From positions 116,103 to 180,102 of the forward strand of contig NIVC01003104.1 of assembly GCA_002269645.1 (NCBI GenBank): 64,000 nt of DNA, read 5' to 3'. The translations under genes and the position numbers were made by a program. Under the pieces are notes generated by a model that worked only from the letters and a program-made list of their open reading frames with translations, ran no database searches and had not been told where the DNA came from. The DNA comes from Macrostomum lignano (taxonomy: Eukaryota). This document shows positions 11,974 through 53,735 of the stretch, one piece after another; position 1 is the first letter of the stretch; the number at the start of each line of letters is the position of its first letter.

Positions 11974-12353
11974 ATGCTCAACTACCTGAAGCGCCGATTC
12001 TCGTCGGGCGATCTGCAAGGCGAAGGAGCTGACAGCCGGGCACAGCAGGAACAGGAGCTCCAGCAGCAGCAGCAGCAGGAGCAGCAAAAAGAGCAAAAAG
12101 AGCAACAGGAGCAAAAGAAAGCGGAAGCTCGGGAATCGCAGGCAGCCACGCCGGTGCAGCCAAGAAAGTCGGTCTACCCAAGCGCGCCAACGTCGCCATC
12201 GAAGACTGCGCAGCCGGCGCCAACTTCGGCCAGCAGCTTCGCTGGGCAGATCGGCAGCAGCATCATCGGCCGCAGCCTGCTGTTCCACGGCCGGTCGGCC
12301 AGCCGGGACCGCTGCAAGGTTCTGCTGGTTGTTGACGAGCCGCACACGGATTG
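11974..12353 (+). CDS. Syn: Synapsin coding exon 1 (domains A, B, start of C)
   Basis: GCCATG start; donor TG|GTGAGC. Confidence 0.95.
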
Positions 12354-20200: not shown

Positions 20201-23200
20201 TTTGAGTCACTCTGCTCTGATTTAAGTCACTCTACACTCATTTGAGCCACTCTGCAATCATTTGAGCCACTCTGCAATCATCGGAGTCACTCTGCAATCA
20301 TTAGAGTCACTCTGCAATCATCGGAGTCACTCTGCAATCATTTGAGCCACTCTGCAATCATTGGAGTCACTCTGCAATCATTGGAGTCACTCTGCAATCA
20401 TTGGAGTCACTCTGCAATCATCGGAGTCACTCTGCATTCATTTAGGCCACTCATTTGACTCACAATGTCAGTTTCAATGAAAAAATATGACGGCCATTGA
20501 TTTCCAAATTTATTTAATCAATAAAAGACAAGTTTGAATGCGCAAGATCCCTCATTTTCGAGGCCAACCAATCAGTTCGAAAATTATCATCTTCTGGTGT
20601 AATTTTAGCTCCTATGAATCACGAGGCGACTTGCGAGATCTGCGTGAACATCAATAGAGGTCTGAGACCGGGGCCTCCGAGACTCCGTCTGCACAGTTTA
20701 TCTGTAGATTCCCTCTTCAATAAAAGTAGAATGAATACAGCAAAATAAAGCACACAGAGGCAGAGACTGACATACAAAAATAATGCAAAAAACATCAATC
20801 CGTACGGAGTAAGCGAGGTAAAACTGCTTGCAGAGAGAGAGCTAGTGTGAGGAAACGGCAAATACATCCATAATAATAATAGTAATAATAAATAAATAAA
20901 TAATAACAGTTATAATAATGATAGTAATAGTGTTTATAATAATAGTAATAATTACTAGTGTTATAACAATTATTACTATTATACTTACAATATTACTAAA
21001 GATTACTATAGATTATAATACGCTCGTATTACTCTTATATATAGTAATAATATTATTACAATTAATAACAATATTAACAATAATAAGACAAAACAGCGTG
21101 GCAATGGTTTCGCGGCCAGCCTTAGCGGTACTCATTGAAAAGCGGCAATTGATGGAAAAACTTGAAGGGGACACCACACGGCTCGACAACTACTGGAAGA
21201 GATGAGCGAGCAAGAAATCCACGTTGCAAATGGGGAACTGCGCTAATATTTTTGGTTTCTGATTTGCTTTCACTGCTAATCTTAGCGGAGCCGCAAACCG
21301 GCATAAATGCACTTTAGAACTGACTGAGCCTGATTCAAATCAGCGCGCTGTTTTGTTAAAAACAGTTCAATCCGTGCAGTGATTTCTAAATAAGACGACT
21401 AACTCTTGAGAACTTCAGACTCAAGCTTAACTACGATATTATTATTAAAGAAGTAATTTCATTTTGTCTACTGCGTATGGTGCTTCTGTAGGAGGAAAAC
21501 ACCAACGTAAGAGCTACACACTGCCACATAAACACTGACCCGAATAGAGACAGAGAGAGGAGACAGAGAGAGAGAAAGACTGAGAGTTGAGTCGGCCTAT
21601 CACTCTTATCTTATATTCTTCTCTCATCCTATCCTATTCTGTTCACTGTCATTCTTACATTACCTTTCATGAAATAAACGAAATCTATCAAAGCATTTCT
21701 GGGCTGCTGCCAATAATGGATTTGCCTGTCGGAACAACTAAGAAATTTTCTTTTGCTATTGTTCGAGCTCGAAGGGTGCAGTGGGCGGTTGGATCAACAG
21801 AATAATATTAATCATTCAGAGGAAAATAACACCGATTTGTCGATAAAGTGTAACGTCCGGTTATTAATATTATTTGATTATGTTAGCGTGTAATGCCTCT
21901 GCGCTGGGCTTCAATTTGAAGATTGCCTGTGGCGCATTTCTTGTAGCGCTTGGTGCTGGCAGTGTGCCAGGCGCAGCCTGCGGTCCGCCTGTAGGGGTCC
22001 CTGTAGTAGGCGCAGTAGGAGAAGCTGGTCAGGCACATGAAGTAGTCCCTGCTGGGGTCGAAGCTGCACGAATTCGCCTGTTCTGCCGTGACGTTTTTGA
22101 TTGGTTGAAACAGTCTGTCCTCGATCTGATTGGGTTGCGAAGGAGGGGAGGTGCTGAGGGTATTGAGAGGCCGATCTGCCTAATGTATTTTGTTTATCTG
22201 CCCGATGCATTCATACATGTATATCTGTGGAATGTGTTTGTCGATCTGTGGAATGTGTTTGTCGATCTGTCGAATGTGTTTGTCGATCTGTGGAATGTGT
22301 TTGTCGATCTGTCGAATGTGTTTGCTAGTGTGTTGAATGTGTTTGTCAATGTATCGAATGTGTTTGTCAATGTGTTTAATGTGTTTTTCGATCTGTCGAA
22401 TGTGTTTGTCAATGTGTTTAATGTGTTTGTCAATGTGTTTAATGTGTTTGTCAATGTGTTTAATGTGTTTGTCAATGTATCTAATGTATTTAATGTGTTT
22501 GTCAATGTATCTAATGTGTTTAATGTGTTTGTCAATGTATCTAATGTGTTTAATGTGTTTGTCAATGTATCTAATGTGTTCGTCGATGTATCTAATGTGT
22601 TTAATGTGTTTGTCAATGTATCTAATGTGTTTAATGTGTTTGTCAATGTATCTAATGTGTTTGTCGATGTATCTAATGTGTTTAATGTGTTTGTCGATGT
22701 ATCGAATGCGTTTGTCAATGTGTTGAATGTGTTCATCGATCTGCCACATTTCTTTGTAGATCTTCCTAATGTATGTATAATCTACCTAATAGGCTCGTCT
22801 ATCTGTCTGATGTCCTCGATTTTCTTAATGTATCTGGTGATCCAATGCAAATGCTGGCAATGTTTCCGTCTACATGATGATCTTATAGCGAATAATACTT
22901 CGACAAAAAATTGAATTTGTTCATCCGCCTGCTCTGTATTTAATTATCCAACTAATCCTTAATGGCATTATATTTGTATAAGTCTAGGGCGGATTATCCT
23001 AAACCGCCCTTCGGCCCACTCCGATAAACGCACTTGTTCATTTTGGCAGCGGTCAGAAAAAAGGTTCCAAGCAGCGGAAATCGCACAGCCCCGTCCAGCC
23101 TCAATCTGTGTCGGCTGTATGAAGCGGAGGCTGGGCGCATTTTTCGCGCGCCTAAAAAACACACAAGTCTGAGATCCCGGCCTAGAGATAAGAAGTCCAG

Positions 23201-26200
23201 CGCCCGCCGCAGAAGCCACTCAATCAACCGGCTGATTCCACAACTGCTAGCTGATAACCGCTGCTGACCCCCCATGCCCCGCTGCTAGCCTGCAGATCAA
23301 CTTTGGCTCGCCTTTCGGCTTCGGGTCACCCACTTCGGAGTCCCGCCTTGCTGCACACTTTCTCTGTGCTGCCCAGCCTTCAGTGCTGGCTGCTGAGCTC
23401 CTGCCGGCTTGGCACTCCACTCCGCCCGCTGTTGCTCGGGCTCCGTCTCTCTCTTCTCCCTCTCCCCCCTCACTTCCCTTCTCACTCTCCATTCTCACTC
23501 TCCTCTCTCACCCCCTCTCACTCCTCACTCACCCTCTCTCACCCTCCTCTCTCACCCCCTCTCACTCTCCTCTCTCACCCTCTCTCACTCTCCTCTCTCA
23601 CCCCCTCTCACTCTCCTCTCTCACCCTCTCTCCCTATCATCATTCACTTCTCTCACTCCCCTCCTCTCCCTCTCACTCATACTCTCACTCCCCTCTCACT
23701 CATACTCACACTCCCCTCTCACTCATACTCTTACTCCCCTCTCACTCATACTCTTACTCCCCTCTCACTCATACTCTTACTCCCCTCTCACTCATACTCT
23801 CACTCTCCCCTCACTCATACTTTTACTCCCCTCTCACTCATACTCTCACTCTCCCCTCACTCATACTCTTACTCCCCTCTCACTCATCCTCTCACTCCCC
23901 TCTCACTCATACTCTCACTCCCCTCTCACTCATCCTTTTAGTCATCCTCTCACTCATCCTCTCACTCCCCTCTCACTCATCCTCTCACTCATCCTCTCAC
24001 TCCCCTCTCACTCATCCTCTCACTCCCCTCTCACTCATCCTCTCACTCATCCTCTCACTCATCCTCTCACTCATACTCTCACTCCCCTCTCACTCATCCT
24101 CTCACTCCCCTCTCACTCCCCTCTCACTCATCCTCTTACTCCCCTCTCACCCATACTCTTACTCCCCTCTCACTCATCCTCTCAGTCCCCTCTCACTCCT
24201 CCTTGAAGTTCGGCAGTGAAATGGGCCATATTGAACAAACTACAGATTAAATATATTCATTTCCTGGCGTTATTGACAGAGGATGGAATTTTGGTTTTCC
24301 AACATTAAAATTTCTATCATTTCTAAACTTGATTTGTTCTATTCTGAGGTAGGAAAAAGATTTTTTTTCAAACAAATTTTTTTTCGCATATTTTATTAAA
24401 TTGACTGCGTTGCAAAAAGTTAGGGTCGCTGCAGTGCTTTTCTTCAAAAAATGTTCCACAAACAAGTTTTTATTAAAAAAAAAATTCTGAACACGCAAAA
24501 TTGCAGGCTGAATTCGATTTGTGCAACTTTTTCAACTAGCTATGCAATTATCTTATATACTAAAAATGAGTTGTCTGTATGTGGGTAGGTATGCGATAGA
24601 TTTCGGAAAAAATGGCTCAACCGATTTTCTTTAAACTTGCACCATTTGATCAGAAATTTTCCTGGGACGGTACATGCATCTTGGCTAAGAAATTGCTCAA
24701 TGTTAAAGGGATTAAATATTCGAAAAACATGCTTTTTTGCAAAGGTCAAGCAAAAATTTCGACTTGAAATGCATTGTAAGAATGCTAAGAAAAAACTGAC
24801 TGACTGAATTTCAATTGTGATAAAGATTGCATCACAACAAGGTGAAAACAGTGCCACAGAAACGCACACAAGACTTGATTAAAATTGCGTAACAATATTG
24901 CTAACTTAAATTAAGACTGATACTGGCTGACTGAGAAATTGATTATGTCATAAATTTTTACTCTAACCGACTTGCTGTAAGAATTGAATTATAAGGGCCA
25001 CAATTCATGTGCTCCAATTGAAAAAAGATAGCCTAGATGCGAACAGACTGGACTGCTAATGCAGCGACCTGGGTTCGAATCTTGGTAGCGCAAAATGATT
25101 TTTTTATTAAAACACCTTAAAAACAAAAAACTGCTAAACATAAAAGAAGCGCAATGTCAAACATACAAGAGCCACCATGTCAAACATAAAAGAGCCACCA
25201 TTTCGGACAACAAAAAAGAGTTACCATTAAGAACATTAAAGAGCCACCGTGTCGAACATTAAAGAGCCACCTTATCAAACATTAAAGAGCCACCATGTCG
25301 AACATTAAAGAGCCACCATGTCGAAACATTAAAGAGCCACCATGTAAAACATTAAAGAGCCACCATGTCAAACATAAAAGAGCCACCATTTCGAACAACA
25401 AAAAAGAGTTACCATTAAGAACATTAAAGAGCCACCATGTCGAACATTAAAAAGCCACCATGTCAAACATAAAACAGACACCATTAAGAACATTAAAGAG
25501 CCACCATGTCGAAACATTAAAGAGCCACCATGTCAAACATAAAACAGACACCATTAAGAACATTAAAGAGCCACCATGTCGAACATTAAAAAGCCACCAT
25601 GTCGAACATTAAAGAGCCACCATATCAAACATTAAAGAGCCACCATGTCGAACATAAAAGATCTACCATGTAGAACATAAAAGAGTCACCATGTCAAACA
25701 TTAAAGAGCCACCATGTAAAACATTAAAGAGCCACTATGTCGAACATAAAAGAGGTACCATGTCAAACATTGAAGAGCCACCATGTCGAACATAAAAGGG
25801 CCACCATGTCAAATATTAAAGAGCCACCATGTAAAACATTAAAGAGCCACCATGCCAAACATAAAAGTGCCCCCATGTCAAACATTAAAGAGCCAGCATG
25901 TCAAACACTAAAGAGCCAGCATGTCAAACATAAAAGAGCCACCATGTCGAACATTATTGAGCCACCATGTCAGACATTAAAGAGCCACCATGCCAAACAT
26001 AAAAGAGCCAACATGTCGAACATAAAAGAGCCACCATGTCAAACATAAAAGAGCCACCATGTCGAACATAAAAGAGCCACCATGCCAAACATAAAAGAGC
26101 CAACATGTCAAACATAAAAAAGCCACCATGTCAACCATAAAAGAACCACCATATCAAACATTAAAGAGCCACAATGTCAAACATAAAAGAGCCACCATAT

Positions 26201-29200
26201 CAAACATTAAAGAGCCACAATGTCAAAACTTAAAGAGCCACCATGTCGAAGATTAAAGTGCTCCCATGTCAAACATAGAAGAGCCACCATGTCAAACATT
26301 AAAGAGCCACAATGTCAAACACAAAAGAGCCACCATTTCAAACCTAAAAGAGCCACCATGTCGAACATTAAAGAGCCACCATGTCGAACATAAAAGAGCC
26401 ACCATATCAAACATAAAAGAACTACCATGTCAAACATTAAAGAGCCACCATGTCGAACATTAAAGAGCCACCATGTCAAACATAAAACAGACACCATATC
26501 AAACATAAAAGAACTACCATGTCAAACATTAAAGAGCCACCATGTCGAACATTAAAGAGCCACCATGTCAAACATAAAACAGACACCAATAAAAACATTA
26601 AAGATCCACCATGTCGAACATTAAAGAGCCATCATATCAAACATAAAACAGCCACTATGTCGAACATTAAAGAGCCACCATGTCAAACATAAAACAGAGC
26701 CACCATTTCGAAAAGTAAAGTAAAGAGCCACCATGTCGAACATTAAAGAGCCACCATGTCAAACATAAAAGATCTACCATGAAGAACATAAAAGAGTCAC
26801 CATGTCAAACATTAAAGAGCCACCATGTAAAACATTAAAGAGCCACTATGTCGAACATAAAAGAGGTACCATGTCAAACATTGAAGAGCCACCATGTCGA
26901 ACATAAAAGGGCCACCATGTCAAATATTAAAGAGCCACCATGTCAAACATTAAAGAGCCACCATGCCAAACATTAAAGAGCCACCATGCCAAACATAAAA
27001 GAGCCACCATGTCGAACATAAAAGAGCCACCATGTCAACCATAAAAGAACCACCACGTCAAGCATATACATTACTCCATGTCAAACATAAAAGAGTCACC
27101 ATGTCAAACATTAAAGAGCCACCATGCCAAACATTAAAGAGCCACCATGTCAAACATTAAAGAGCCAGCATGTCAAACATAAAAGAGCCACCATGTCGAA
27201 CATTATTGAGCCACCATGTCAGACATTAAAGAGCCACCATGCCAAACATAAAAGAGCCACCAAATCAAACATAAAAGAACTACCATGTCAAACATCAAAG
27301 AGCCACCATGTCGAACATTATTGAGCCACCATGTCGAACATAAAAGAGCCACCATGCCAAACATAAAAGAGCCGCCATGTCAAACATAAAAAAGCTACCA
27401 TGTCAACCATAAAAGAACCACCACGTCAAGCATATACATTACTCCATGTCAAACATTAAAGATCCACCATGTCAAACATTAAAGAGCAGGCATGTCAAAC
27501 ACTAAAGGGCCAGCATGTCAAACATAAAAGAGCCACCATGTCGAACATTATTGAGCCACCATGTCAGACATTAAAGAGCCACCATGCCAAACATAAAAGA
27601 GCCACCATGTCGAAGATTAAAGTGCTACCATGTCAAACATAGAAGAGACACCATGTCGAACAACTGAGCCACCATGTCAAACATAACAGAGACACCATGT
27701 CAAACATTAAAGAGCCACCATGTCAAACATTAAAGAACCACGATGTCAATCATTAAAGAGCCACTATGTCAAACATATACGTGACTCCATGTCAAACATT
27801 AAAGAGCTACCATGTCAAACATAGAAGAGCCACCATGTCAAACATAGAAGAGACACCATGTGTCCATGTCAAACATAGAAGAGCCATCATGTCAAACATA
27901 AAAAGAAGTGTCATGCCAAACAAAATGGAGCCACTATAAAGCTAAGGAAATTATTGCACTAGCTACTTGATGTCTGGTGGATGCTTGCTATTTAAGGATG
28001 GATACTTGCTATCAGGGGGATGCTTGGTATCTGAGTGATGCTTGCTATTGGGGGGAGGGATGCTTGCTATCGGAAGAATGCTTGCTATCTGGGGTAACTT
28101 GCTATTGGGGGATGCTTGCTCTTGGGGAGTGGAGGGTACTTGCTATCTGAGAGGGGGTTGCTAGCTATCTATAAGGATTCTTTGTATCCAGGGATGCTTG
28201 CTATCTGGGGGATGGTTGCATGCTGTCTGGGGATGCTTGCATGCTGTCTGGGGATGCTTGCATGCTGTCTGGGGATGCTTGCATGCTGTCTGGGGATGCT
28301 TGCATGCTGTCTGGGGATGCTTGCATGCTGTCTGGGGATGCTTGCATGCTGCCTGGGGATGCTTGCTATCTGGGCGATTCTTGCTATCTGGGAGATGCTT
28401 GCTATCTGGGGGATGCTTGCATGCTGTCTGGGGATGCTTGCTATCTGGGGGATTCTTGCTATCTGGGGGATGCTTTCGTGCTGTCTGGGGATGCTTGCTA
28501 TATCTGGGGGATTCGTGCTATCTGGGAGATGCTTGCATGCTGTCTGGGGATGCTTGCTATCTGGGGGATGCTTGCTATCTGGAAGATGCTTGCATGCTGT
28601 CTGGGGATGCTTGCTATCTGGGGGATTCTTGCTATTTGGGGGATGCTTGCTATCTGGGAGATGCTTGCATGCTATCTGGGAGATGCTTGCATGCTGTCTG
28701 GGGATGTTTTCTTTACAGATGGAATGTCTGTTGTCTTTGTGAAAGCTTTATTTCGCTGTCTTTTTGTTACTTTTAGAGAACAGATATTCTATTTAGATGT
28801 CCCCCATCGGGGGGCGAAGATTGCTAGTCCTATATACTAAAAATGAAAATCTTGTTTGTTTGTACGCAATCGATTAGAGAAAAAATGGCTGGACCGATTT
28901 TGTTCGAACTTGCACTGTTCGATCAGAAATTTTCCCGTGACGGTACATGCATCGTGGCTAAGAAATTGCTCGATGCTAAAGGCATTAAATATTCGAAAAA
29001 CATGCTTTTTTGCAAAGGTCAAGCAAACTTTTTGACTTGAAATGCATTGTAAGAATGCTAGAGAAAAAACTGACTGGTTGAATTCTGATTCTGAAATAGA
29101 TTGCATCATAACTGAATTGTAACTCTGACTTGAATTGAAAATGCAGTGTGGAAGCGTAGCACCAGACTTGATTTAAATTGCGTAACCATATTGTTAACTG

Positions 29201-32200
29201 ATACTGACTGACTGAGAAACTGATTATGTCATAACTGCTTCGTGTGATTTACTCTATGCTTGGCTTTTAAAGTGTTGAATTATATAAGTGAAAAATTTGA
29301 TGTTATCAAAACGATGAGAGCTAGCCTAGAGGTGAACAAACTGAAATGCTAAATGCAGTTTGGTTCGAATTGGTTCGAATTTTCATAGAGTATAATTTTT
29401 TTAATTAAAGCTTTTCAACGTCAGGAAAACTAAAAGACTTTTTAAAAAGAAGCGTCATTTAAAAAATCATAGAAGCGTCATGTAAAAAATCATAGAAATG
29501 CCATGTAAAAAATCGTAGAAGCGTCATGTAAAAAATCGTAAAAGCGTCATGTAAAAAATCTTAGAAGCGTCATGTAAACAATCATAGAAGCGTCATGTAA
29601 AAAATCGTAGAAGCGTCATGTAAAAAATCTTAGAAGCGTCATGTAAACAATCATAGAAGCGTCATGTAAACAATCATAGAAGCGTCATGTAAACAATCAT
29701 AGAAGCGTCATGTAAACAATCATAGAAGCATCATGTAAAAAATCGTAGAAGCGTCATTTAAAAAATCATAAAAGCGTCATGTAAAAAATCTTAGAAGCGT
29801 CATGTAAAAAATCGTAGAAGCGTCATGTAAACAATCATAGAAGCGTCATGTAAACAATCATAGAAGCGTCATGTAAAAAATCGTAGAAGCGTCATGTAAA
29901 CAATCATAGAAGCGTCATGTAAAAAATCATAGAAGCGTCATGTAAAAAATCATAGAAGCGTCATGAAAAAATCATAGAAGCCTCATTTAAAAACTAATGA
30001 AAGTGTCATTTAAAATATTAAGAAGCATCATGCTAGAATAAAAGAAGCGTCATGTCAGACATGAAGGGTGTCATGTAAAAATTAAATGAAGCTATAATGC
30101 TGTGCTGGGGAGAATTACTGAGACGTCAAGGCTCTTAGAGAAAAACTGAGATTACGGGGGGGGGGTTTCTGAGATGTCAAAGCAAAAGTCAGAAGCTACT
30201 TCAAAGTTCATGTACTTTACTCCATTTTTTTATTGCATTCTTTGTTGGCTCGTCACGGGGGGGCGCTGATAGAAGAAAAGTCATGTAAAAAATAAAAGTA
30301 CCACTATGTATACATAAAAGAAAAGTCATGTCGAAGTTAAAAGATTCATTTGGGAATTGCTACGATGTCAAAGCTTGGAGGGAATCGTTATAGTGCTGTG
30401 ATTCTTAAAGAAGGAATCACTAAAATGTCAAGGCTTAGGGGAGAAGAATTGCTGAGATTTCAAGGCTTTAGGTTGGGTTAAAGTTAGGTTTAGGTCAGGT
30501 GTGGGTTGAGGGTTATATTTTATCGGGTTTCAAGGTTAACAGGGGATTTTTTAGATTTCAAGGTTTATGGGGGCCATTGCTGACATGTCAAGGCTTACGG
30601 GGGGAATAGCTGAGATGTCAAGGCTCACGGGGGTATAAATGAGATTTCAAGGCTAAAGTCAGAAGCTACATGTAGTTTATTGAAAACTTTTTATTACATT
30701 ATTTGATACCTCCTCAGGGGAGGGATCGCTGATAAAAAAGCGTAATGTAAAAAATAAAAGAAGCTTCATGTCGAAGTTAAGAGATTCATTTGGGAATCCC
30801 AACGATGTCGAGACTTGCAGGGAATCGCTATAATGCTGTAGTAGTGCTATAATGACTCTCAGAGAGAATTACTGAAATTTCAATGCTTTAGGGTTAGGTT
30901 AGGGTTAGGGTTAGGGTTAGGCTAGGGTTAGGGTTAGAAGGTTGACAGATATTTTTAGATTTCCAAGGCTTATTGGGGGCATTGCTGAGATGTCAAGGGG
31001 GGAAGTTGATATGTTAAAGCTTGTGGGGGGGGGGTAACTGACATGTCAAGGCTTACAAGGTTTGACAGGAGATTTTTTAAGATTTCAAGGATGCATGTAG
31101 CTTATTAAAAAAACGTGTATTGCATTTCTTTGGTTCCCCAACGGGGGGCGTAGATTGCTAGTTTTAGCTAAAAAGTACGCTGTGGATATCGTAAAAAATT
31201 GTTCATATTCTGCAAATTCGTTCGAAAAATGCAGCAGAAAATTTAATTTGAAATCGTAATTAAAAGTTTTCTCTTTTCTATTTGTTCGTTTGAAACCTCA
31301 CTCCCATCACTCAAATCTCACTCCAATTGCTCAATTCTCACTCCTATCGCTCAAATCTCACTCCCATCACTCAAATCTCACTCCCATCACTCAAATCTCA
31401 CTCCCATCACTCAAATCTCACTCCCATCAATCAAATCTCACTCCCATCACTCAAACCTCACTCCCATCACTCAAATCTCACTCCTATCGCTCAAATATCA
31501 CTCCCATCACTCAAATCTCACTCCCATCACTCAAATCTCACTCCCATCACTCAAATCTCACTCCCATCACTCAAATCTCACTCCCATCACTCAAATTTCA
31601 CTCCTATCGCTCAAATATCACTCCCATCACTCAAATCTCACTCCCATCACTCAAATCTCACTCCCATCACTCAAATCTCACTCCTATCGCTCAAATCTCT
31701 CTCCCATCACTCAAATTTCACTCCTATTGCTCAAATCTCACTCCCATCACTCAAATCTCACTCCCATCACTCAAATCTCACTCCTATTGCTCAAATATCA
31801 CTACCATCGCTCAAACCTCACTCCCATCACTCAAATCTCACTCCCATCACTCAAATTTCACTCCTATCGCTCAAATTTCACTCCTATCGCTCAAATATCA
31901 CTCCCATCACTCAAATTTCACTCCTATCGCTCAAATATCACTCCCATCACTCAAATCTCACTCCTATCGCTCAAACCTCACTCCCATACTCAAATCTCAC
32001 TCCTATCGCTCAAACCTCACTCCTATCGCTCAAACCTCACTCCCATCACTCAAATCTCACTCCCATCACTCAAATCTCACTCCCATCACTAAAATCTCAC
32101 TCCCATCACTCAAATTTCACTCCTATCGCTCAAATATCACTCCCATCACTCAAATTTCACTCCTATCGCTCAAATATCACTCCCATCACTCAAACCTCAC

Positions 32201-35200
32201 TCCCATCACTCAAATCTCACTCCCATCACTCAAATCTCACTCCTATCGCTCAAATCTCTCTCCCATCACTCAAATTTCACTCCTATTGCTCAAATCTCAC
32301 TCCCATCACTCAAATCTCACTCCCATCACTCAAATCTCACTCCAATTGCTCAATTCTCACTCCTATCGCTCAAATCTCACTCCCATCACTCAAACCTCAC
32401 TCCCATCACTCAAATCTCACTCCCATCACTCAAATCTCACTCCCATCACTCAAATCTCACTCCCATCACTCAAATTTCACTCCTATCGCTCAAATATCAC
32501 TCCCATCACTCAAATTTCACTCCTATTGCTCAAATATCACTCCCATCACTCAAATCTCACTCCTATCGCTCAAACCTCACTCCCATACTCAAATCTCACT
32601 CCTATCGCTCAAACCTCACTCCTATCGCTCAAATATCACTCCCATCACTCAAATTTCACTCCTATCGCTCAAACCTCACTCCCATACTCAAATCTCACTC
32701 CTATCGCTCAAACCTCACTCCTATCGCTTAAATATCACTTCCTTCACTCAAATCTCACTCCCATTACTCAAATCTCACTCCAATTGCTCAATTCTCACTC
32801 CTATCGTTCAAATATCACTTCCTTCACTCAAATTTCACTCCCATTACTCAAATCTCACTCCAATTGCTCAAATCTCACTCCCATTACTCAAATCTCACTC
32901 CAATTGCTCAAATCTCACTCCTCTCACTGTTTTCTTATATCTCATATATTCCTAGATCTGTTCCCCTATATATTTGCCCTGCATCTGGCCTATCCCTCGC
33001 TATCCCTGTTCCAGACAAAAGTGCGTTGAATACTTGTAACTTTGCACTTCTACAGCTCCTTCAAATGCTAGACTGCATGCAAAGCCGGTATTGAGGGTTG
33101 AGAGATTTGGGCGCCCGTAGCAGCGGCCCCCCGTCAAGCGTCATTCGCTGACAGCCGACAGGCGGCCGCTGATTGAACCGTAGCCCTTTGTCTTCCCCCA
33201 GCTGTTGCCGCGTAGGCGGAATGGACGGCGGTTTCTATTGAAGTGCCATTGAAGTTTTGACAATTCGACATGCGCCTTCGCCCATCAGCTATGGGTCTAT
33301 CAAGCTCTTTCCCTTGAAAGTTGAATACCCTAATCATTTCGGCGTCGGTAATGAAAACAAGGTTGACACTTTCTTAGAAAAGAAAGGAAGCAGACTAATG
33401 AGAAGGGAATTAACTTTTGATAATAAAGTTCTAGTACTGTAGATTTGTGATTCGTGTACTGGTTAATTTTTGGTTCCTGTACTGATTAATGTATGGTTCC
33501 TGTACTGGTTGATTAATGATTCCTGTACTGGTTGATTTTTGCTTCCTATACTGGTTGATTTATGATTCTTGTACTGGTTGATTTATGATTCCTGTACTGG
33601 TTGATTAATGATTCCTGTACTGGTTGATTTATGCTTCCTATACTGGTTGCTTTATGGTTCATGTATACTGGTTGATTTACGGTTCCTGTACTGTAGTTTC
33701 CATCACATTTATGCTTTTGACTTAGGGTTATTGTAAGGCTACTTAACCCCTTCCCTACTCCATATGTAGATAGGCTCGGTACAAATCTCATTGAACGCGC
33801 CTACTCACCCGACACTTTGAGCAGCCTCTAGCGTAGGTTCCGTGCCTGAGGTATCTGGCCTGTTGATCCGTCACCACGGGGGAGCCCAGCTCCGAGTTCA
33901 TTATTGCCTTCCGCATCGTCTTATTGGGCCACTGGGCGATCCAGCTGCACACGGACAGCATCGGCTGGCCGTGCTCCAGTTTGCCTGGCAACGGGGGCGT
34001 CAGTAACAGTCCGAGTTTCATTCTGGGAAATACGCCCCATCTCTCTAAGGTGGTCAGCTGTGAACACTCTCATCTCATTGCCTCACTCTCATCTCATTGC
34101 CTCACTCTCATCTCAGTGCCTCACTCTCATCTCATTCCTCTCACTTTCATCTCATTGCCTCACTCTCATCTCATTGTCTCTCACTCTCATCTCATTGCCT
34201 CGCTCTCATCTCATTGCCTCACTCTCATCTCATTGTCTCTCACTCTCATCTCATTGCCTAACCCATCCGCCCCACCCGCTCACCGGTCACCAGGTACAGT
34301 TTTTTCAAATGCACTTCGCGCGAGATAATGCTGTTGGCTTCGCCGTGGTACCTGACCACGATGCCGTGGCCGCAGTTGTCTCTCTCTCCGTAAATCCACA
34401 GGTGCATCCGACGGTTGGGGATGAGGTTTGGAATCTGCGTTCGGAATCCGTTGGTTTTGCGGGCGGGATTGATGAGTTGACAGTTGATCTGCTACTCCCC
34501 AACAGAGCACTTATTATCCAGCAAAGCACTCACCTTGGCCGAGTTGCGGAATACCGCTTTCACGCTGACCCAGTAGCGCTTGAGGTGCATGGTTGAGCTC
34601 AAATATTCACCGGTCATTCGTAGGAACCGAACTTTCAAAGCTGTCAATGCAGTTATGGGGGTAATGCGACAGTTATTGCAAGGTTATACAATAAGATTAT
34701 CGATGCATGCCCATGCGTACGTCAGAAAATGTACATGTGGACAAGTACAGCTGGGCAAGTCGCTGTCCGATTCTCACCGAAGTCGCTGGCGCAGAAGGCC
34801 ACCTGCGGGTGCAGCGGGTGATGCGGCCGGCAGGGGCAGGGCTTGGTGCCGAACCCATTGGGTATGACGGCTGCCACTGGCGGCGGCCCGCCGGCGGCCA
34901 GGGCCCAGCCGCCCACTAGCAGGAGGCTGGCGAGGCTGAACAACCGGGCGGCGGCTGTCGGCGACGAGTTTGCCGGCGTCTGCGTCGGCGGCAGCGGCGG
35001 CGAGTGCAGGTGGGAGGGCTCAAGTGTCGGGCTGCTGCTGCTTGAACGGGCCATGCCGCAGGGCAAGCAGCATCGCCGATTCAGGACTGGCTGGCGGCTG
35101 GGGGATTCGAGCTGGGACCTTGGGCGCGCTGACGCAGAGAAGGGAGCGCAGGCTTGGAGCGGCAGAATTGCGCCAAAAGTTCAACAATAAACGGCAAAAG

Positions 35201-38200
35201 CAGAAGAGGGGACCAGAGAGCGGTGCTTGGGCGAGTCGTCAAAGTCTGCTTTTTCAATAGCCAAGTGCCGATCATAGCTGGGGGGAGTTGAGGTGGCGTC
35301 TCCCCCTCTTAATCCTTTATCCTATCCGGGCGGGCCGCTCCGTCCCCTCCCTGCCACTTGCTATCCCCGGGAGCCGGGAAGACGGGAAGAAAGAGATTAG
35401 GAAGGAAGGAGAGAGACATGGGCTTAGAGACGCTAGAAGACCGGGAGACTCAGTAAGGCCGGCGATTGGGCCCTGCTGTTCCGGTCGGGGATGGAGGGGC
35501 TCTGCGTGCGGGTACACTGGAGTGCGCGAGAGCTCGACAAGGGGACAGGCGGGGACTCGAGGGTTCAGGCAGGATTGCAATCGCCGCTCATTAATCTGGC
35601 TATGAAGCTCTCTGCCGCTAAATTGCTTTCCTAGCCGTGTTCTGTCTCTCTACTAGTATCTACTCGAGCAGAACCCTCCAGATGAAGCTGAGCCATAAGG
35701 CCTATGTGCCGCAGGGCGTACTTGATGAGCCCCTCCCCCGGTAAGGGTGAAACCTGTCTTAATCCCAACGTTGGTTCAAGTCGTCACGATTCTGCCGAAA
35801 TTTCCTTATAGTGTTTAAAAAATTATCCCCCCGTTCAAACAAAAACCAAGTTGTGAGCCCGAAGTCAGGACTCTGGGGAATCGCTATTGGGACAGTGATG
35901 GCCAGAGGTAGAGCATCTGATCTTCTTCAATTGTCAAGAGATTTAATTTTATTGGCCAATAAATACTGACTTGGCAGCAACCTCCCCTATGTCAGGGATG
36001 CTAAACTGTGTCAGGGTTGCTGTCAGGGATGCTAAACTGTGTCAGGGTTGCTGTCAGGGATGCTAAACTGTGTCAGGGATGCTAAACTGTGTCAGGAATG
36101 CTAAACTGTGTCAGGGATGCTAAACTGTGTCAGGGATGCTGTTAGGGATGCTAAACTGTGTCAGGAATGCTAAACTGTGTCAGGAATGCTAAACTGTGTC
36201 AGGGATGCTAAACTGTGTTAGGGATGCTAAACTGTGTCAGGAATGCTAAACTGTGTCAGGAATGCTAAACTGTGTCAGGAATGCTAAACTGTGTCAGGGA
36301 TGCTAAACTGTGTCAGGGATGCTAAACTGTGTCAGGGATGATAAACTGTGCCAGGGATGCTAAACTGTGTCAGGGATGCTAAACTGTGTCAGGGATGCTA
36401 AACTGTGTCAGGAATGCTAAACTGTGTCAGGGATGCTAAACTGTGTCAGGAATGCTAAACTGTGTCAGGAATGCTAAACTGTGTCAGGAATGCTAAACTG
36501 TGTCAGGGATGCTGTCAGGGATGCTAAACTGTGTCAGGGATGCTAAACTGTGTCAGGGATGCTAAACTGTGTCAGGGATGCTAAACTGTGTCAGGGATGC
36601 TAAACTGTGTCAGGGATGCTAAACTGTGTCAGGGATGCTAAACTGTGTCAGGAATGCTAAACTGTGTCAGGGATGCTAAACTGTGTCAGGGATGCTAAAC
36701 TGTGTCAGGGATGCTAAACTGTGTCAGGAATGCTAAACTGTGTCAGGGTTGCTAAACTGTGTCAGGGTTGCTGTCAGGGATGCTAAACTGTGTCAGGGAT
36801 GCTAAACTGTGTCAGGGATGCTAAACCGTCCCTATCCTCGATCTACTCTCAGCCCAGCCCATATGCCCAGCAGAAGCCGCGGTGCATGAAAAACAAATGC
36901 CGACTTTTCTGGGCCCCGACGTCGGCTGGCGGACTGCTCAGATATGAATAATAAATGCGGGCTGAGCTCAGGGCCGCTCGCGTCAGCTTTAATGCGTGAA
37001 TAATACAACAGTATGCTCGCATGCGCGAATACGCAATGCCAAGAAGACCTAAAAGCGGAACCTGGAGTGGCAGCTCTTCCTGAAAAATAGGATTAGGCAA
37101 GGGCTCAAAGCAGCTCAGTGGTGAACGCAGCTGAATCTCGAGCCGCGACCCCTGGTTCGATTCCGTGCGGCATTCATTTGGGGGGTTTGTGTACGAAAAT
37201 TGGCCGGAAGGTTGTCGTGAGATTCATGGCAATGAGGATCAAACCCCAGGCACAGAGACTGTACATGCCTATCGATTAGAAAGTCATGAGTCGAGTATGT
37301 GCTCAGGAGTCAAGCGGAATGGGCAGAATTGCCTCAGTCGAGTATGTGCTCAGGAGTCAAGCGGAATGGGCAGAATTGCCTCAGTCGAGTATGTGCTCAG
37401 GAGTCAAGCGGAATGTGCAGAATTGCCTCAGTCGAGTATGTGCTCAGGAGTCAAGCGGAATGGGCAGAATTGCCTCAGTCGAGTATGTGCTCAGGAGTCA
37501 AGCGGAATGGGCAGAATTGCCTCAGTCGAGTATGTGCTCAGGAGTCAAGCGGAATGTGCAGAATTGCCTCAGTCGAGTATGTGCTCAGGAGTCAAGCGGA
37601 ATGGGCAGAATTGCCTCAGTCGAGTATGTGCTCAGGAGTCAAGCGGAATGGGCAGAATTGCCTCAGTCGAGTATGTGCTCAGGAGTCAAGCGGAATGTGC
37701 AGAATTGCCTCAGTCGAGTATGTGCTCAGGAGTCAAGCGGAATGGGCAGAATTGCCTCAGTCGAGTATGTGCTCAGGAGTCAAGCGGAATGGGCAGAATT
37801 GCCTCAGTGCTGCTTGTGGGATGATGTCGATGAAAGCGTTGCTTGCGGCTATAAATTTTGTACAGCTCGTGGACTTTTTCTCAGAATTCCAAAGATCTTC
37901 AACTGAGAAGTGGAGACTTTATTGTAATTAAAAAAACAGCTCAATCTTACAAAATTTGGGCTTCGCGGAACAGCCGGCCATGCCAAGTGGTCGCCTTGGC
38001 GCTACTGCTGTCTGAAAACACACTGAGCGAGACAACCCCTTGACAGATGGCGCAGAAAACACAGTCTGGTCTGGGCGGTGCCTTTCAATGATCCCGACTT
38101 CTGTTTCTCAATAAGTCGGTGCGTGGCGGGGAGGGGATTATGAATAATTGCTGAGTATTGAGATTGTGAGAATGGAATTATTGCCTAGTTGGGGGGGGGG

Positions 38201-41200
38201 CATTTCGCTGACTGCGGGGTTGGCGTCTGGCGGCGCGATCTGAGCTGAGCACAGACCAAGAAGTAAGACATGGGGAGTAAAAATCTTGTGCCTCCTTCCC
38301 AGCCAACCCCTCATCCGCGGTCGATAGTGGGTGAAGAATTCCCTTCCTAAGCCACTCCCACTCGTCTGCTTTTCGGTTCCTACTAGGCAGATTGACAAAA
38401 AAAATAAAAATGTGGTAATTAATTGTAGCTTTTTAGACTGTCTTTAGGTATCTTTTATTCTAGAGATTAATTCTAATCACTTATTTTAAAGCTTGCCGGT
38501 ATAAAAACTTGCGGAAATAAAAGACTGAGTTAAACTTACAAGGTAACCACTGAAGTAGGCTAAACTACAGGTTAGAAAAGATCGCCGTTCGTAGAAGCTT
38601 TTGCCTCTTCCATGATTTTATTCTTTAAGCATGCTTCGCATTTTAATGCATTCACACAATATTGAATGGAATCAAGACTTAAACCCAAACTGTTCTGCTT
38701 CTGGGCGCTTATCTGCTTCTGGGCGCTTATCTGCTTCTGGGCGCTTATCTACTTCTGGGCGCTTATCTGCTTCTGGGCGCTTATCTGCTTCTGGGCGCTT
38801 ATCTGCTTCTGGGCGCTTATCTACTTCTGGGCGCTTATCTGCTTCTGGGCGCTTATCTGCTTCTGGGCGCTTATCTGCTTCTGGGCGCTTATCTGCTTCT
38901 GGGCACTTATCTGCTTCTGGGCGCTTATCTGCTTCTGGGCGCTTATCTACTTCTGGGCGCTTATCTGCTTCTGGGCGCTTATCTGCTTCTGGGCGCTTAT
39001 CTGCTTCTGGGCGCTTATCTGCTTCTGGGCGCTTATCTGCTTCTGGGCGCTTATCTGCTTCTGGGCGCTTATCTGCTTCTGGGCGCTTATCTGCTTCTGG
39101 GCGCTTATCTGCTTCTGGGCGCTTATCTGTTTCCATTGAGGCTTTCCTGCCTCTGTTGATGGTGACGCAGACAGACAAGATACTCGTAGTTCGTACTGAC
39201 AACTGAATAATGGTAATCCTGTTGCTTAACATTGGGACTAGTCGACTGGAGAAATTCCACCTCCAGTGTGCACTGATAACAGTATTGAGGCTGAGTGAAA
39301 CAGCCCCAGAGTTGGATTGTGATTCCAGCCGTTTCGAAGTCTGACTGCATTAAAAATAACCAAAGAAAATCCTGAGACAACTTGAAAGTGCAAAGAAAGA
39401 ACAATCACAACTTGAAAACAATAAGCTCGTACTTGGCGAGTGCCACTGTTGGGAGAAACCAGAAAGACCAGTAAAATGCTCTGTACCCACTACCCTGTTC
39501 CCCTTCACCTTCACCCACTATCGATGTTTTTGGCAGGACGGAGGGACCATTTTTTCCGCAGCTTTTTGTCAAAAAACACGCCAAGGCAGGGAATGGGGCT
39601 TGCGAAGTCGAGATACTTCTTGGTCTGTGAAACTGAGTAATAAAAAATTGCTTCCGAATTGTTTCCGATCGACGCAAATCTGAGGACTCGAATTGTGCAC
39701 TATTTATGGTTTTTATGATATTAATCTACTTGTATGCATAGCATTTGTGCTTAAGCATATTATGTCAGGGTTGCTAAACTGTGTCAGGAATGCTAAACTG
39801 TGTCAGGAATGCTAAACTGTGTCAGGGATGCTAAACTGTGTCAGGAATGCTAAACTGTGTCAGGGTTGCTAAACTGTGTCAGGGTTGCTAAACTGTGTCA
39901 GAAATGCTAAACTGTGTCAGGAATGCTAAACTGTGTCAGGAATGCTAAACTGTGTCAGGGTTGCTAAACTGTGCCAGGAATGCTAAACTGTGTCAGGGTT
40001 GCTAAACTGTGTCAGGGTTGCTAAACTGTGTCAGGAATGCTAAACTGTGTCAGGGTTGCTAAACTGTGTCAGGGTTGCTAAACTGTGTCAGGGTTGCTAA
40101 ACTGTGTCAGGGTTGCTAAACTGTGTCAGGAATGCTAAACTGTGTCAGGGTTGCTAAACTGTGTCAGGGTTGCTAAACTGTGTCAGGAATGCTAAACTGT
40201 GTCAGGGTTGCTAAACTGTGTCAGGAATGCTAAACTGTGTCAGGGTTGCTAAACTGTGTCAGGGTTGCTAAACTGTGTCAGAGTTGCTAAACTGTGTCAG
40301 GAATGCTAAACTGTGTCAGGGTTGCTAAACTGTGTCAGGAATGCTAAACTGTGTCAGAAATGCTAAACTGTGTCAGGAATGCTAAACTGTGTCAGGGTTG
40401 CTAAACTGTGTCAGGGTTGCTAAACTGTGTCAGGAATGCTAAACTGTGTCAGGGTTGCTAAACTGTGTCAGGAATGCTAAACTGTGTCAGGGTTGCTAAA
40501 CTGTGTCAGGGTTGCTAAACTGTGTCAGGGTTGCTAAACTGTGTCAGGGTTGCTAAACTGTGTCAGGAATGCTAAACTGTGTCAGGGTTGCTAAACTGTG
40601 TCAGGAATGCTAAACTGTGTCAGAAATGCTAAACTGTGTCAGGAATGCTAAACTGTGTCAGAAATGCTAAACTGTGTCAGGAATGCTAAACTGTGTCAGG
40701 GATGCTAAACTCTGTCAGGAATGCTAAACTGTGTCAGGGATGCTAAACTGTGTCAGGGATGCTAAACTGTGTCAGGGATGCTAAACTGTGTCAGGAATGC
40801 TAAACTGTGTCAGGGTTGCTAAACTGTGTCAGGAATGCTAAACTGTGTCAGAAATGCTAAACTGTGTCAGGAATGCTAAACTGTGTCAGGGATGCTAAAC
40901 TGTGTCAGGAATGCTAAACTGTGTCAGGGTTGCTAAACTGTGTCAGGAATGCTAAACTGTGTCAGAAATGCTAAACTGTGTCAGGAATGCTAAACTGTGT
41001 CAGGGATGCTAAACTGTGTCAGGAATGCTAAACTGTGTCAGGGATGCTAAACTGTGTCAGGGATGCTAAACTGTGTCAGGAATGCTAAACTGTGTCAGGG
41101 ATGCTAAACTGTGTCAGGGATGCTAAACTGTGTCAGGGATGCTAAACTGTGTCAGGAATGCTAAACTGTGTCAGGGATGCTAAACTGTGTCAGAAATGCT

Positions 41201-44200
41201 AAACTGTGTCAGGGTTGCTAAACTGTGTCAGGGATGCTAAACTCTGTCAGGAATGCTAAACTGTGTCAGAAATGCTAAACTGTGTCAGGAATGCTAAACT
41301 GTGTCAGGGATGCTAAACTGTGTCAGGAATGCTAAACTGTGTCAGGGTTGCTAAACTGTGTCAGGGATGCTAAACTGTGTCAGGGATGCTAAACTGTGTC
41401 AGGGATGCTAAACTGTGTCAGGGATGCTAAACTGTGTCAGGGATGCTAAACTGTGTCAGGAATGCTAAACTGTGTCAGGGATGCTAAACTGTGTCAGGGA
41501 TGCTAAACTGTGTCAGGGATGCTAAACTGTGTCAGGAATGCTAAACTGTGTCAGGGATGCTAAACTGTGTCAGAAATGCTAAACTGTGTCAGGGTTGCTA
41601 AACTGTGTCAGGGATGCTAAACTCTGTCAGGAATGCTAAACTGTGTCAGAAATGCTAAACTGTGTCAGGAATGCTAAACTGTGTCAGGGATGCTAAACTG
41701 TGTCAGGAATGCTAAACTGTGTCAGGGTTGCTAAACTGTGTCAGGGATGCTAAACTGTGTCAGGGATGCTAAACTGTGTCAGGGATGCTAAACTGTGTCA
41801 GGGATGCTAAACTGTGTCAGGGATGCTAAACTGTGTCAGGAGAGATAAGAACTGTGTTAAGAGAGATAAACTATCTCAGAGGTTGCTAAACTGTATCAGA
41901 CACATGCGCTAGACTGTGTCAGGGACTGCTAAGTATCAGGCTCCAGGCATTGTCAGGGGTCTCAGTACTGTGTCAGCTACGGTAGAAATAAGTTAGATTG
42001 TCTCTAAGATGCCGAAAATCAAAGATTTAACTCAGGCGAGCTTGAAATGCTAAAAATAGAAGCAGCAAGTTGCAGAGCAGCGCGCGAACCCCTTTCTATT
42101 GATATTGCGTCGTCGATTGGGTCTGTCAATAGAAATGGTATCCCAGTCTCAAAATAATCATTTCCAGCTCTTCTATTTCGCCATCCCACGACTGACCGGT
42201 TATTTTCCTCACGCTGAAAAAAATTTTGCTCATAAGTGGAATGGCGATTTCTATTTTGGTTGTGCTTAACGACTAATGCCTTCCTTCTCTCTGTGTCTCT
42301 GGACTCTGTCCCCTGTCCAAGCCCTCCTTCCTGCCTGAAGTTTCATTACGAGTATAAACGGAGGCCGTTTGCACTAACCCTGCCAGCCCGCCCCCTCCCA
42401 CTCCCCCTCAAAATGGATGAAATTTGCCAAAAATATCTCGCTGAAGCTAGGGCGGATCCGCGGCTTCCCCATAGAATAGCCAACTAGGGCAGGGGGTAGC
42501 GTGTTTACACAGCCAGTGCTGGGCTGCGATTTTCAATGGGACAGTGGGCTGAGCCATGGAGGCCCAGCAACCAACTCTTCCCCGAACAGCCCAACAGCTT
42601 TTTAGCTTGCACACAAAACACAAACTACGACTCAGTTGAAGCTTTTCTTTGTAGAATTAAGTCTGATTTTAAAGCTGAATGAATTCTCCGTGATGGAGTA
42701 GAAATCATTGCACAATGAGCAGTAGTCTATGAGCTAGATTCCAGTGTCTGAATCGCGTTACGACCCAGGTCATGCGATTCACAGCCGTGAGAGCCAACCC
42801 CAGTAGTCTATGAGCTAGATTCCAGTGTCTGAATCGGGTTACGACCCCAGGTCATGCGATTCACAGCCGTGAGGGCCAACCCCAGTAGTCTATGAGCTAG
42901 ATTCCAGTGTCTGAATCGCGTTACGACCCCAGGTCATGCGATTCACAGCCGTGAGGGCCAACCCCAGTAGTCTATGAGCTAGATTCCAGTGTCTGAATCG
43001 CGTTACGACCCCAGGTCATGCGATTCACAGCCGTGAGGGCCAACCCCAGTAGTCTATGAGCTAGATTCCAGTGTCTGAATCGGGTTACGACCCCAGGTCA
43101 TGCGATTCACAGCCGTGAGGGCCAACCCCAGTAGTCTATGAGCTAGATTCCAGTGTCTGAATCGGGTTACGACCCCAGGTCATGCGATTCACAGCCGTGA
43201 GGGCCAACCCCAGTAGTCTATGAGCTAGATTCCAGTGTCTGAATCGCGTTACGACCCCAGGTCATGCGATTCACAGCCGTGAGGGCCAACCCCAGTAGTC
43301 TATGAGCTAGATTCCAGTGTCTGAATCGGGTTACGACCCCAGGTCATGCGATTCACAGCCGTGAGGGCCAACCCCAGTAGTCTATGAGCTAGATTCCAGT
43401 GTCTGAATCGGGTTACGACCCCAGGTCATGCGATTCACAGCCGTGAGGGCCAACCCCAGTAGTCTATGAGCTAGATTCTAGTGTCTGAATCGCGTTACGA
43501 CCCCAGGTCATGCGATTCACAGCCGTGAGGGCCAACCCCAGTAGTCTATGAGCTAGATTCCAGTGTCTGAATCGGGTTACGACCCCAGGTCATGCGATTC
43601 ACAGCCGTGAGGGCCAACCCCAGTAGTCTATGAGCTAGATTCCAGTGTCTGAATCGCGTTACGACCCCAGGTCATGCGATTCACAGCCGTGAGGGCCAAC
43701 CCCAGTAGTCTATGAGCTAGATTCTAGTGTCTGAATCGCGTTACGACCCCAGGTCATGCGATTCACAGCCGTGAGGGCCAACCCCAGTAGTCTATGAGCT
43801 AGATTCCAGTGTCTGAATCGGGTTACGACCCCAGGTCATGCGATTCACAGCCGTGAGGGCCAACCCCAGTAGTCTATGAGCTAGATTCCAGTGTCTGAAT
43901 CGCGTTACGACCCCAGGTCATGCGATTCACAGCCGTGAGGGCCAACCCCAGTAGTCTATGAGCTAGATTCTAGTGTCTGAATCGCGTTACGACCCCAGGT
44001 CATGCGATTCACAGCCGTGAGGGCCAACCCCAGTAGTCTATGAGCTAGATTCTAGTGTCTGAATCGCGTTACGACCCCAGGTCATGCGATTCACAGCCGT
44101 GAGAGCCAACCCCCAAGGCACAGACAGTGTACATGCCTGACGATTAGATAGTCAGGGCTGCTGTACACCCTGTGTGAGCGTGTTCATGAGTCGAGCATGT

Positions 44201-53138: not shown

Positions 53139-53735
53139 GTTAATGCGTCTTAATTGCAAACAACACAGGCCCAAACTGATGCTGCATCCAGCACTTTGAC
53201 TCGTTTACGAGGCAGTAAAATTTTTGGCAAAGAACATGGCCGGTTAGAATCGCAGCGCTTTCCAACAGCCGTTAGCAACTGTGTTTCTGGTCCAATATTA
53301 TTGTCAAACAAGACAGCAGCTGCTGAAGCTTTTGAAAAACGAAAAAAAGAAAGCAATTTTCTCGAACCTTTGCAATTTTTCGGACTGTCGTAGAAGCCAA
53401 AAACAGGTGCTTTGCCTTGTCCAATAAATGGGTAGCACTTTCTGGCTTCTAAGAGAGCATTTTCTTGTTGCATTTTTATCAACTTTTTTAGTTATTGTCC
53501 CGAAGTTGCCGATTTTTACAGCATGTTTTTAGCAGTTTTTGTGGACATCAGTTACATACAGGCAAATACTAAAAGGATTCAATGTGCACGAATGCCAGTA
53601 ACGATTTCTGGCCTCTTAACCGGTAAGAGATTCACAAAAGAACGAACCGTGAGAAAAAGATCTTAATCAATGAATCAAGTAAATAAGCAGCCACACTGTT
53701 GTGATACGTTTGAAACGTGAAAGAACCGCTTCGAG

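Follow-up and report, generated by a model that had tools for sequence, protein, structure and literature searches.

TIMP inhibition is taught as strictly dependent on a free first cysteine (Cys1), which is released when the signal peptide is removed. In the canonical mechanism the free alpha-amino group and the carbonyl of Cys1 chelate the catalytic zinc of the protease, and residue 2 enters the S1' pocket. The window analyzed in this study, 64,000 nucleotides identical to contig NIVC01003104.1 (assembly GCA_002269645.1) of the flatworm Macrostomum lignano, carries on its minus strand a TIMP gene in which a long leader with an internal hydrophobic segment precedes Cys1. The question raised by this locus is whether such a TIMP could act in the canonical way at all. 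The explanation that we regard as the best, and overall as rather probable, is that the gene is a synapsin-nested TIMP orthologue whose mature product has other residues ahead of Cys1, so that the canonical mechanism is blocked.

The gene itself is already annotated, as locus BOX15_Mlig011161g2 of M. lignano with the NCBI protein PAA53312.1. Six exons with GT-AG introns, spliced from the window, reproduce this protein of 352 aa residue for residue. The exons and the parts of the leader are given below, with a slash at splice junctions.

37951-37981, minus strand: exon 0, the upstream coding exon of the annotated model, with its ATG at 37981 and the donor T/gtaaga; the peptide of PAA53312.1 maps here.
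34778-35128, minus strand: exon 1, from the acceptor gcgtcag/CG to the donor G/gtgaga, with the entire leader and residues 1-23 of the TIMP domain.
35055-35128, minus strand: in-frame stretch upstream of the ATG at 35054-35052, including an RRCCLP block and an out-of-frame ATG at 35073-35071.
34944-35054, minus strand: Ser/Pro/Thr-rich N-region (MARSS...TAAAR), residues 36-72 of PAA53312.1, predicted to be disordered.
34887-34943, minus strand: hydrophobic segment, residues 73-91 of PAA53312.1, a candidate signal peptide core or signal anchor.
34839-34886, minus strand: spacer of 16 residues between the hydrophobic segment and Cys1, residues 92-107 of PAA53312.1.
34830-34838, minus strand: Cys1-Pro2-Cys3 of the TIMP domain, where the Pfam TIMP alignment starts; its counterpart in Drosophila Timp and human TIMP-1 to -4 is C-T/S-C.
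34778-34829, minus strand: remainder of the N-terminal ridge, with a 3-residue insertion relative to canonical TIMPs in the alignment.
34534-34640, minus strand: exon 2 of the spliced model.
34284-34434, minus strand: exon 3 of the spliced model (IPNLIPNRR...KKLYLVT), with the acceptor acgcag/ATT.
33809-33984, minus strand: exon 4 of the spliced model (...GCSKCR).
21883-22125, minus strand: exon 5, encoding the C-terminal domain and the stop codon, beyond an 11.7-kb intron full of minisatellites.

Exon 0 also encodes the first base of a Ser codon and is joined to the exon-1 acceptor at 35128. The C-terminal exon (21883-22125) was located via its cysteine pattern, as a tblastn search for it with human and Drosophila TIMPs gave weak matches only. 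An alternative exon-3 acceptor near 34489 was rejected: it adds a 13th cysteine and disagrees with the annotated proteins, whereas the acceptor at 34434 gives 12 cysteines and the exact match. The older automatic models P0004 and P0007 and the cluster member P0005 were set aside as mis-fusions or unrelated, P0004 being clearly a mis-fusion. A second genomic copy of the gene (L001) is about 99% identical around the gene, which makes it too similar to inform on constraint. It possesses exon 0 too, 99% identical together with its surroundings, yet its annotation starts at MARSS.

The initial annotation, made from the letters of this stretch, had counted 72 residues between an ATG at 35054 and the Cys1 codon 34836-34838, with no nearer ATG. 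Both statements hold on the minus strand: the ATG at 35054-35052 is followed by 72 codons without a further in-frame ATG, and Cys1 (codon 34838-34836) is residue 73 from it. The described succession of a Ser/Pro-rich stretch of about 36 residues, a hydrophobic stretch, a spacer and C-P-C is likewise present. The length of the leader needs a qualification, for 72 residues is correct only from that ATG; with the annotated upstream exon and its ATG at 37981, 107 residues may precede Cys1, with 72 of them ahead of the hydrophobic segment. That this is not a chance open reading frame (ORF) is borne out by the identity of the spliced model to PAA53312.1 and by its match to Pfam TIMP. The architecture recurs in a 39%-identical paralogue described below.

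Judged from its sequence and predicted fold, the window protein is a true TIMP. It matches Pfam TIMP (PF00965) from Cys1 onward with an E-value of 1.4e-10 and 41.7 bits against a cut-off of 23.1, and its best sequence matches in the PDB are TIMP-1. Twelve cysteines follow the leader. In the N-domain, the six cysteine positions match those of Drosophila Timp and human TIMP-1 to -4. Alignment with the human proteins extends to part of the C-domain cysteines, whose spacing differs from the canonical one and is nearer to that of Drosophila Timp. C-x-C and HPQ-AFC are both retained in the alignment. In the AlphaFold2 model the core reaches a predicted local distance difference test score (pLDDT) of about 90, while the leader (1-72, with 8-72 below 50), the spacer at 92-105 and one inserted loop lie below a pLDDT of 50. 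When this model was searched with Foldseek, the top 12 hits were full-length TIMP-1 and TIMP-2 with target TM-scores of 0.67-0.74 (0.70-0.74 for the best of them), and the NTR domains of complement proteins and PCOLCE ranked below them. This result is not fully independent of sequence, since the alignment used for prediction consisted mostly of vertebrate TIMPs.

Close relatives of the protein were found within M. lignano only. An exhaustive search of 1.8 billion representative proteins returned three matches, all from this species, and a profile search with the Macrostomum alignment added PAA53312.1. Such profile searches, even at E <= 10, recovered M. lignano proteins only and no orthologue elsewhere. 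A mixed TIMP profile gave, among the 120 matches listed, vertebrate TIMP-2/-4 only, which serve here as a canonical baseline and for alignment depth and not as a survey of invertebrates. The gene is not new, since PAA53312.1 and PAA59871.1 appear as 'branch TIMPs' in the supplement of a TIMP survey, in an orthogroup made up of Macrostomum proteins only (PMC10755359). No papers came up when the literature was searched for the three gene identifiers, and as far as we found the N-terminal architecture of these Macrostomum TIMPs is not discussed in the literature.

The genomic position of the gene is that of TIMP genes in other animals. It lies antisense within the 28-kb intron at 16871-44761, in the C-domain part of a synapsin gene.

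11974-49655, plus strand: synapsin host gene, identified by tblastn; its joined pieces match Pfam Synapsin_C (E 1.3e-53) and Synapsin (E 3.9e-23).

The synapsin exons lie at about 11974-12354, 12920-13018, 15656-15817, 16779-16871, 44761-44811, 46805-46960, 47983-48255 and 49578-49655. The paralogue, PAA89245.1 (Mlig025997g1), is 39% identical to the window TIMP with the same exon ends, and it is found antisense in a second synapsin gene (L002 4909-21137), in the same intron between the same flanking exons. Antisense nesting of TIMP in synapsin genes has been described from Nematostella among cnidarians to humans, in an account that did not cover flatworms (PMC2825198). The two synapsin/TIMP pairs found here extend this nesting to Platyhelminthes. 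From their organization, the pair seems to have been duplicated as a unit in the M. lignano lineage, and the duplicated pairs resemble the vertebrate pairs SYN1/TIMP1, SYN2/TIMP4 and SYN3/TIMP3.

The unusual N-terminus recurs in the paralogue. PAA89245.1 has a leader of at least 40 residues, an uncharged run of 24 residues, LLFSCICCCLALFSAAALSTATAM, and a 24-residue spacer that ends in FGRPG and is followed by CPCRPHNPHHPQQAFC. The spacer thus leads into CPCRPH, with CLC instead of CPC in two of the three paralogue copies. Identity between the window protein and the paralogue is 83% in the ridge (Cys1 to +23), 33-34% in the rest of the protein and 25% in the spacer, so that the ridge is the best conserved part between them. 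The three paralogue copies (L002, L003 and L004) differ at two sites only over 511 nt of exon 1 and upstream flank. One difference is synonymous; the other, Pro (CCG) versus Leu (CTG) at TIMP residue 2 (L002 about 10268-10270), is the sole amino-acid difference and may be due to chance because it is a CpG transition. Residue 2 sets protease specificity in canonical TIMPs. The proline at this position that the initial annotation had stressed is real in the window gene and in its second copy, where the listed vertebrate TIMP-2/-4 proteins have Ser in 119 of 120 and Thr in the remaining one, and it loses weight through the leucine of the two paralogue copies. With the 3-residue insertion in the ridge (window 34800-34829, minus strand), each paralogue has three His in a stretch of eight residues, PHHPLHPQ in one and PHNPHHPQ in the other (canonical CTCV---PPHPQ), and this sequence may form an altered metal-contacting edge.

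How the leader would be handled was considered by comparison with 118 of the listed vertebrate TIMP-2/-4 proteins. The uncharged hydrophobic run has 19 residues in the window TIMP and 24 in the paralogue against a median of 12 in the vertebrate proteins, and the distance from its end to Cys1 is 16 and 24 residues, respectively, against 5-9. The window TIMP has 72-107 residues before Cys1, and the canonical median is 26. The best 19-mer hydrophobicity sum is +1.45 in the window TIMP, which is borderline, and -1.55 in the paralogue, with a vertebrate median of +4.0 and minimum of 0.5. AlphaFold2 predicts a helix of 18 residues over the hydrophobic segment of the paralogue (pLDDT about 75) and of 5 residues in the window protein. 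In the latter an Arg directly precedes the segment and the N-region ahead of it comprises 36-72 residues. A type II signal anchor is characterised by a hydrophobic segment of about 18-25 residues that stays uncleaved, a long N-region in the cytosol and positive charge on the N-side. The spacer of the window protein, rich in Pro, Gly and Ala and 16 residues long, is predicted to be disordered; the spacers of the two paralogues have only an FG-basic-P tail in common, 1-5 residues before Cys1.

Signal peptidase cleavage directly before CPC was examined with the -3/-1 rule. The bond before Cys1 fails this rule in both paralogues, with Pro at -1 in the window protein and Arg at -3 in the paralogue, and human TIMP-2 passes the same test (ADA/C). 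A-x-A sites are located straight after the hydrophobic run instead, ALA/AGG in the window protein (after residue 88) and ATA/MPQ in the paralogue, so that cleavage there is possible in both. By this heuristic, cleavage directly before CPC is disfavoured and the masking of Cys1 proposed in the initial annotation holds up. On these heuristic grounds, the hydrophobic segment would be a type II anchor that stays uncleaved, or else a long signal peptide cut about 18-19 residues before Cys1, and from either handling it follows that Cys1 would not be the N-terminus.

We propose the following course for the window protein. It would enter the endoplasmic reticulum via the internal hydrophobic segment (residues 73-91), after a disordered N-region of 36-72 residues that contains cysteines; the segment would be followed by the disordered 16-residue linker and then by Cys1. 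That the segment stays uncleaved as a type II signal anchor is slightly favoured on sequence features and is put forward tentatively. A cut by signal peptidase at ALA/AGG, which would leave an extension of 18-19 residues, is possible too and more doubtful. In both cases Cys1 would stay internal and the TIMP domain would be displayed tethered or extended. The domain might then act after a second cut in the linker, or non-canonically through the conserved ridge. The initial annotation had put forward a latent pro-TIMP, a membrane-anchored TIMP of type II and a non-inhibitory protein of the NTR fold; its reading is partly borne out, and these three stand side by side as candidates.

The likely consequence can be gauged from engineered TIMPs. 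A single Ala added at the N-terminus rendered TIMP-2 inactive (PMC5410052). For N-TIMP-3, one or two extra Ala abolished inhibition of MMPs and left that of ADAM17 and ADAMTS-4/-5, three to five made it about 100-fold or more weaker, and [-8A]N-TIMP-3 showed no inhibition of MMPs, ADAM17 and ADAMTS-4/-5 at 1 uM (PMC3003256). The general statement of the initial annotation that N-terminal extensions abolish inhibition is accordingly right for MMPs or for longer extensions; it does not hold for one or two residues in N-TIMP-3, which keep ADAM/ADAMTS inhibition (PMC3003256). Since the extension in the window TIMP would be of at least 16 residues, or a tether, the canonical mechanism should be blocked by analogy with these mutants, and without a second cut the protein would probably be unable to act on proteases as a textbook TIMP does.

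A more specific proposal is that these flatworm TIMPs are masked precursors, tethered or with a propeptide, that are unmasked by a regulated second cut near the F-G-x-(K/R)-P tail. Such natural 'pro-TIMPs' appear improbable on the present evidence. We know of no proteolytic activation step for any TIMP.

Several points weigh against a blocked Cys1. Both paralogues come from one species, M. lignano, and the orthologue searches elsewhere came up empty. A cleaved signal peptide is quite possible in the window gene as judged from sequence and model, because the hydrophobic core is short and followed by GG and a textbook A-x-A site, and the AlphaFold2 helix covers only 5 residues. The argument on cleavage is a heuristic one, resting on the -3/-1 rule and on hydrophobicity sums. 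The true start codon is uncertain, with the two annotated copies of the window gene starting at different ATGs. Conservation of C-x-C and the ridge is moreover what would be expected if the canonical edge were in use, and it hints at an eventual exposure of Cys1. As strongly conserved as the ridge is, its edge must still be in use, be it after a second cut or in another binding mode.

The alternative that survives best is nevertheless unlikely in our judgment: a canonical secreted TIMP, in which the leader is removed constitutively by an atypical signal peptidase cut or by a routine second protease or exopeptidase, Cys1 is set free and inhibition is of the normal 1:1 kind, S1' tolerating Pro2 or Leu2. 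At residue 2, two of the three paralogue copies have Leu, which fits the S1' pocket of MMPs as judged from their substrate preferences. The published survey files these genes among the TIMPs (PMC10755359), in line with this alternative. The retention of C-x-C, HPQ-AFC and all 12 cysteines, and of the ridge as the most conserved segment between the paralogues, fits this alternative, and the shared F-G-(x)-basic-Pro tail 1-5 residues before Cys1 could be a processing signal. The bond before Cys1, however, breaks the -3/-1 rule in each paralogue and is 16-24 residues away from the end of the hydrophobic run, and no dibasic or furin-type site is found in the sequence before Cys1. The residues directly preceding Cys1 differ, KP in one paralogue and PG in the other, so that the sequences do not obviously specify a single precise cut at a common position. 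Metzincins disfavour Pro at P1', which also speaks against this alternative.

A second alternative is that the actual mRNA has a different first exon, or is joined at a spliced-leader acceptor, with a short signal peptide right before Cys1, and that the long leader is untranslated or mis-assigned. We consider this very unlikely. It draws on the different ATGs of the two annotated copies, on the mis-fused model P0004, on the out-of-frame ATG 19 nt upstream of the ATG at 35054-35052, and on the report that about 30% of M. lignano genes are trans-spliced to a leader ending in ATG (PMC8629364). Against it, the leader and Cys1 lie in one uninterrupted exon with the same ends in both paralogues, and sequence inspection revealed no AG acceptor just before Cys1 that is conserved between them. 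The sole candidate signal for targeting to the endoplasmic reticulum is inside exon 1, and skipping it would require a replacement. The extra 5' exon that does exist in the annotated model makes the leader longer and brings no normal signal peptide, and in this respect, too, the masking of Cys1 held up.

The region upstream of the annotated Met bears on the start of translation. RRCCLP is encoded in frame directly upstream of this Met in both paralogues (window 35055-35075, minus strand; L002 9974-9994), and the three nucleotide differences in the block between them are all synonymous. An out-of-frame ATG is located 19 nt upstream of the annotated Met in both. The conservation of RRCCLP with synonymous changes only, together with the shared out-of-frame ATG, suggests that translation starts further upstream in both paralogues and that the N-region is under constraint; either the true start would lie upstream, or a conserved upstream ORF would regulate translation. 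Short overlapping ORFs open at the out-of-frame ATG in both paralogues, one of which reads MLLATSDGAAAAAASAFV followed by a stop. A search for a homologue of exon 0 at the paralogue locus, by blastn and a scan for ATG...GTRAG, found nothing convincing. A spliced-leader ATG joined at the exon-1 acceptor was rejected, being out of frame when worked out by hand. Just upstream of exon 0, the sequence tgttttcag/ACAGCAG (window about 38014-38019, minus strand) fits the published M. lignano trans-splice acceptor motif [T/C]TNCAG. From this candidate acceptor a spliced-leader ATG would be in frame with the exon-0 ATG, 10 codons upstream of it and free of stops.

The last alternative, that recent polyploidy has left a duplicate in decay or without function, with an odd N-terminus due to relaxed constraint, is highly improbable: M. 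lignano is described as a hidden polyploid with many redundant copies (PMC10468722), the family is so divergent that the whole-library search yields M. lignano proteins only, and residue 2 is Pro or Leu among copies, but the frames are intact with every intron GT-AG in all copies examined, the 12 cysteines and the ridge are kept between paralogues otherwise 33-34% identical, which calls for long-term purifying selection, and the leader architecture predates the recent polyploidy since it is common to both old paralogues.

With the blocked Cys1 as the preferred explanation, the window TIMP can be compared with known systems. It shares with the canonical TIMPs (human TIMP-1 to -4 and Drosophila Timp) the two-domain TIMP/NTR fold, the C-x-C...HPQxAFC pattern and a count of 12 cysteines, and also a multi-exon gene with similar exon ends that is antisense in the synapsin C-domain intron. 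Apart from the leader, the spacer and residue 2, it differs from them by the 3-residue insertion after Cys3-x-Pro and by two long loop insertions. The engineered extended TIMPs (Ala+TIMP-2 and [-1A] to [-8A]N-TIMP-3) have in common with it a Cys1 whose alpha-amino group would not be free. Those are laboratory constructs, whereas in Macrostomum the extension occurs naturally, exceeds theirs in length (at least 16-19 residues, or a predicted tether) and keeps its architecture between paralogues.

A Pro-rich or other spacer between the NTR domain and the predicted signal peptide, as seen here, is also found in the cnidarian proteins AvTIMP (Anemonia viridis), NvTIMPa (Nematostella) and AmTIMPf (Acropora). 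The authors remarked on this spacer in passing and set these proteins, which are without Cys-X-Cys, aside as non-canonical (PMC4860685). The Macrostomum proteins, by contrast, retain C-x-C and the whole ridge, strongly conserved. NTR modules that work without a free N-terminal Cys, namely the PCOLCE NTR domain, the C345C domains of C3, C4 and C5, netrin and sFRP, possess the same OB-like NTR fold with residues before the first Cys. They are not nested in synapsin genes, are without the TIMP C-terminal domain and HPQxAFC, and have Foldseek scores far below those of TIMP-1/-2. What the sequences point to in Macrostomum is the combination of a synapsin-nested TIMP, a conserved C-x-C ridge, a presumably masked Cys1 and recurrence in two old paralogues.

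The remainder of the window is rich in repeats. Long minisatellite arrays, about 30 in all, take up a large part of the intronic and intergenic DNA; their periods range over 11-131 bp and their copy numbers reach about 150. Examples are those at 3018-4318, 25136-27861, 31293-32921, 39763-41899 and 50869-53139. One 19-bp unit (TGTCAGGGATGCTAAACTG) forms the arrays at both 35990-36826 and 39763-41899. Translation of such arrays accounts for many long ORFs of the six-frame list. The ORF at 62568-63299 (minus strand, 243 aa) matches Pfam DUF5524 with an E-value of 1.5e-19; downstream of synapsin, it probably represents a gene, or one exon of a gene, for a conserved protein that is uncharacterised. 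In the ORF at 56921-57868 (minus strand, 315 aa), the N-terminal half (MASKPAKFLYPSEVRFF...) is free of repeats and is continued by a 21-bp minisatellite that is translated as VCQHVDR repeats; its Pfam search gave sub-threshold matches of coiled-coil type only, and its coding status is putative.

At the synapsin-nested TIMP position of M. lignano, the reactive ridge is strongly conserved, yet Cys1 is placed behind 16-24 extra residues and possibly a membrane anchor. M. lignano is a regeneration model with RNA interference and transgenesis, and matrix remodelling matters in regeneration; the masking of Cys1 is therefore directly testable in this animal. If the masking is true, one of three conclusions would follow: an inhibitor that is tethered or latent can be encoded by the ancestral TIMP locus of bilaterians, the ridge has a conserved function without the need of a free N-terminus, or a processing step not yet described exists.

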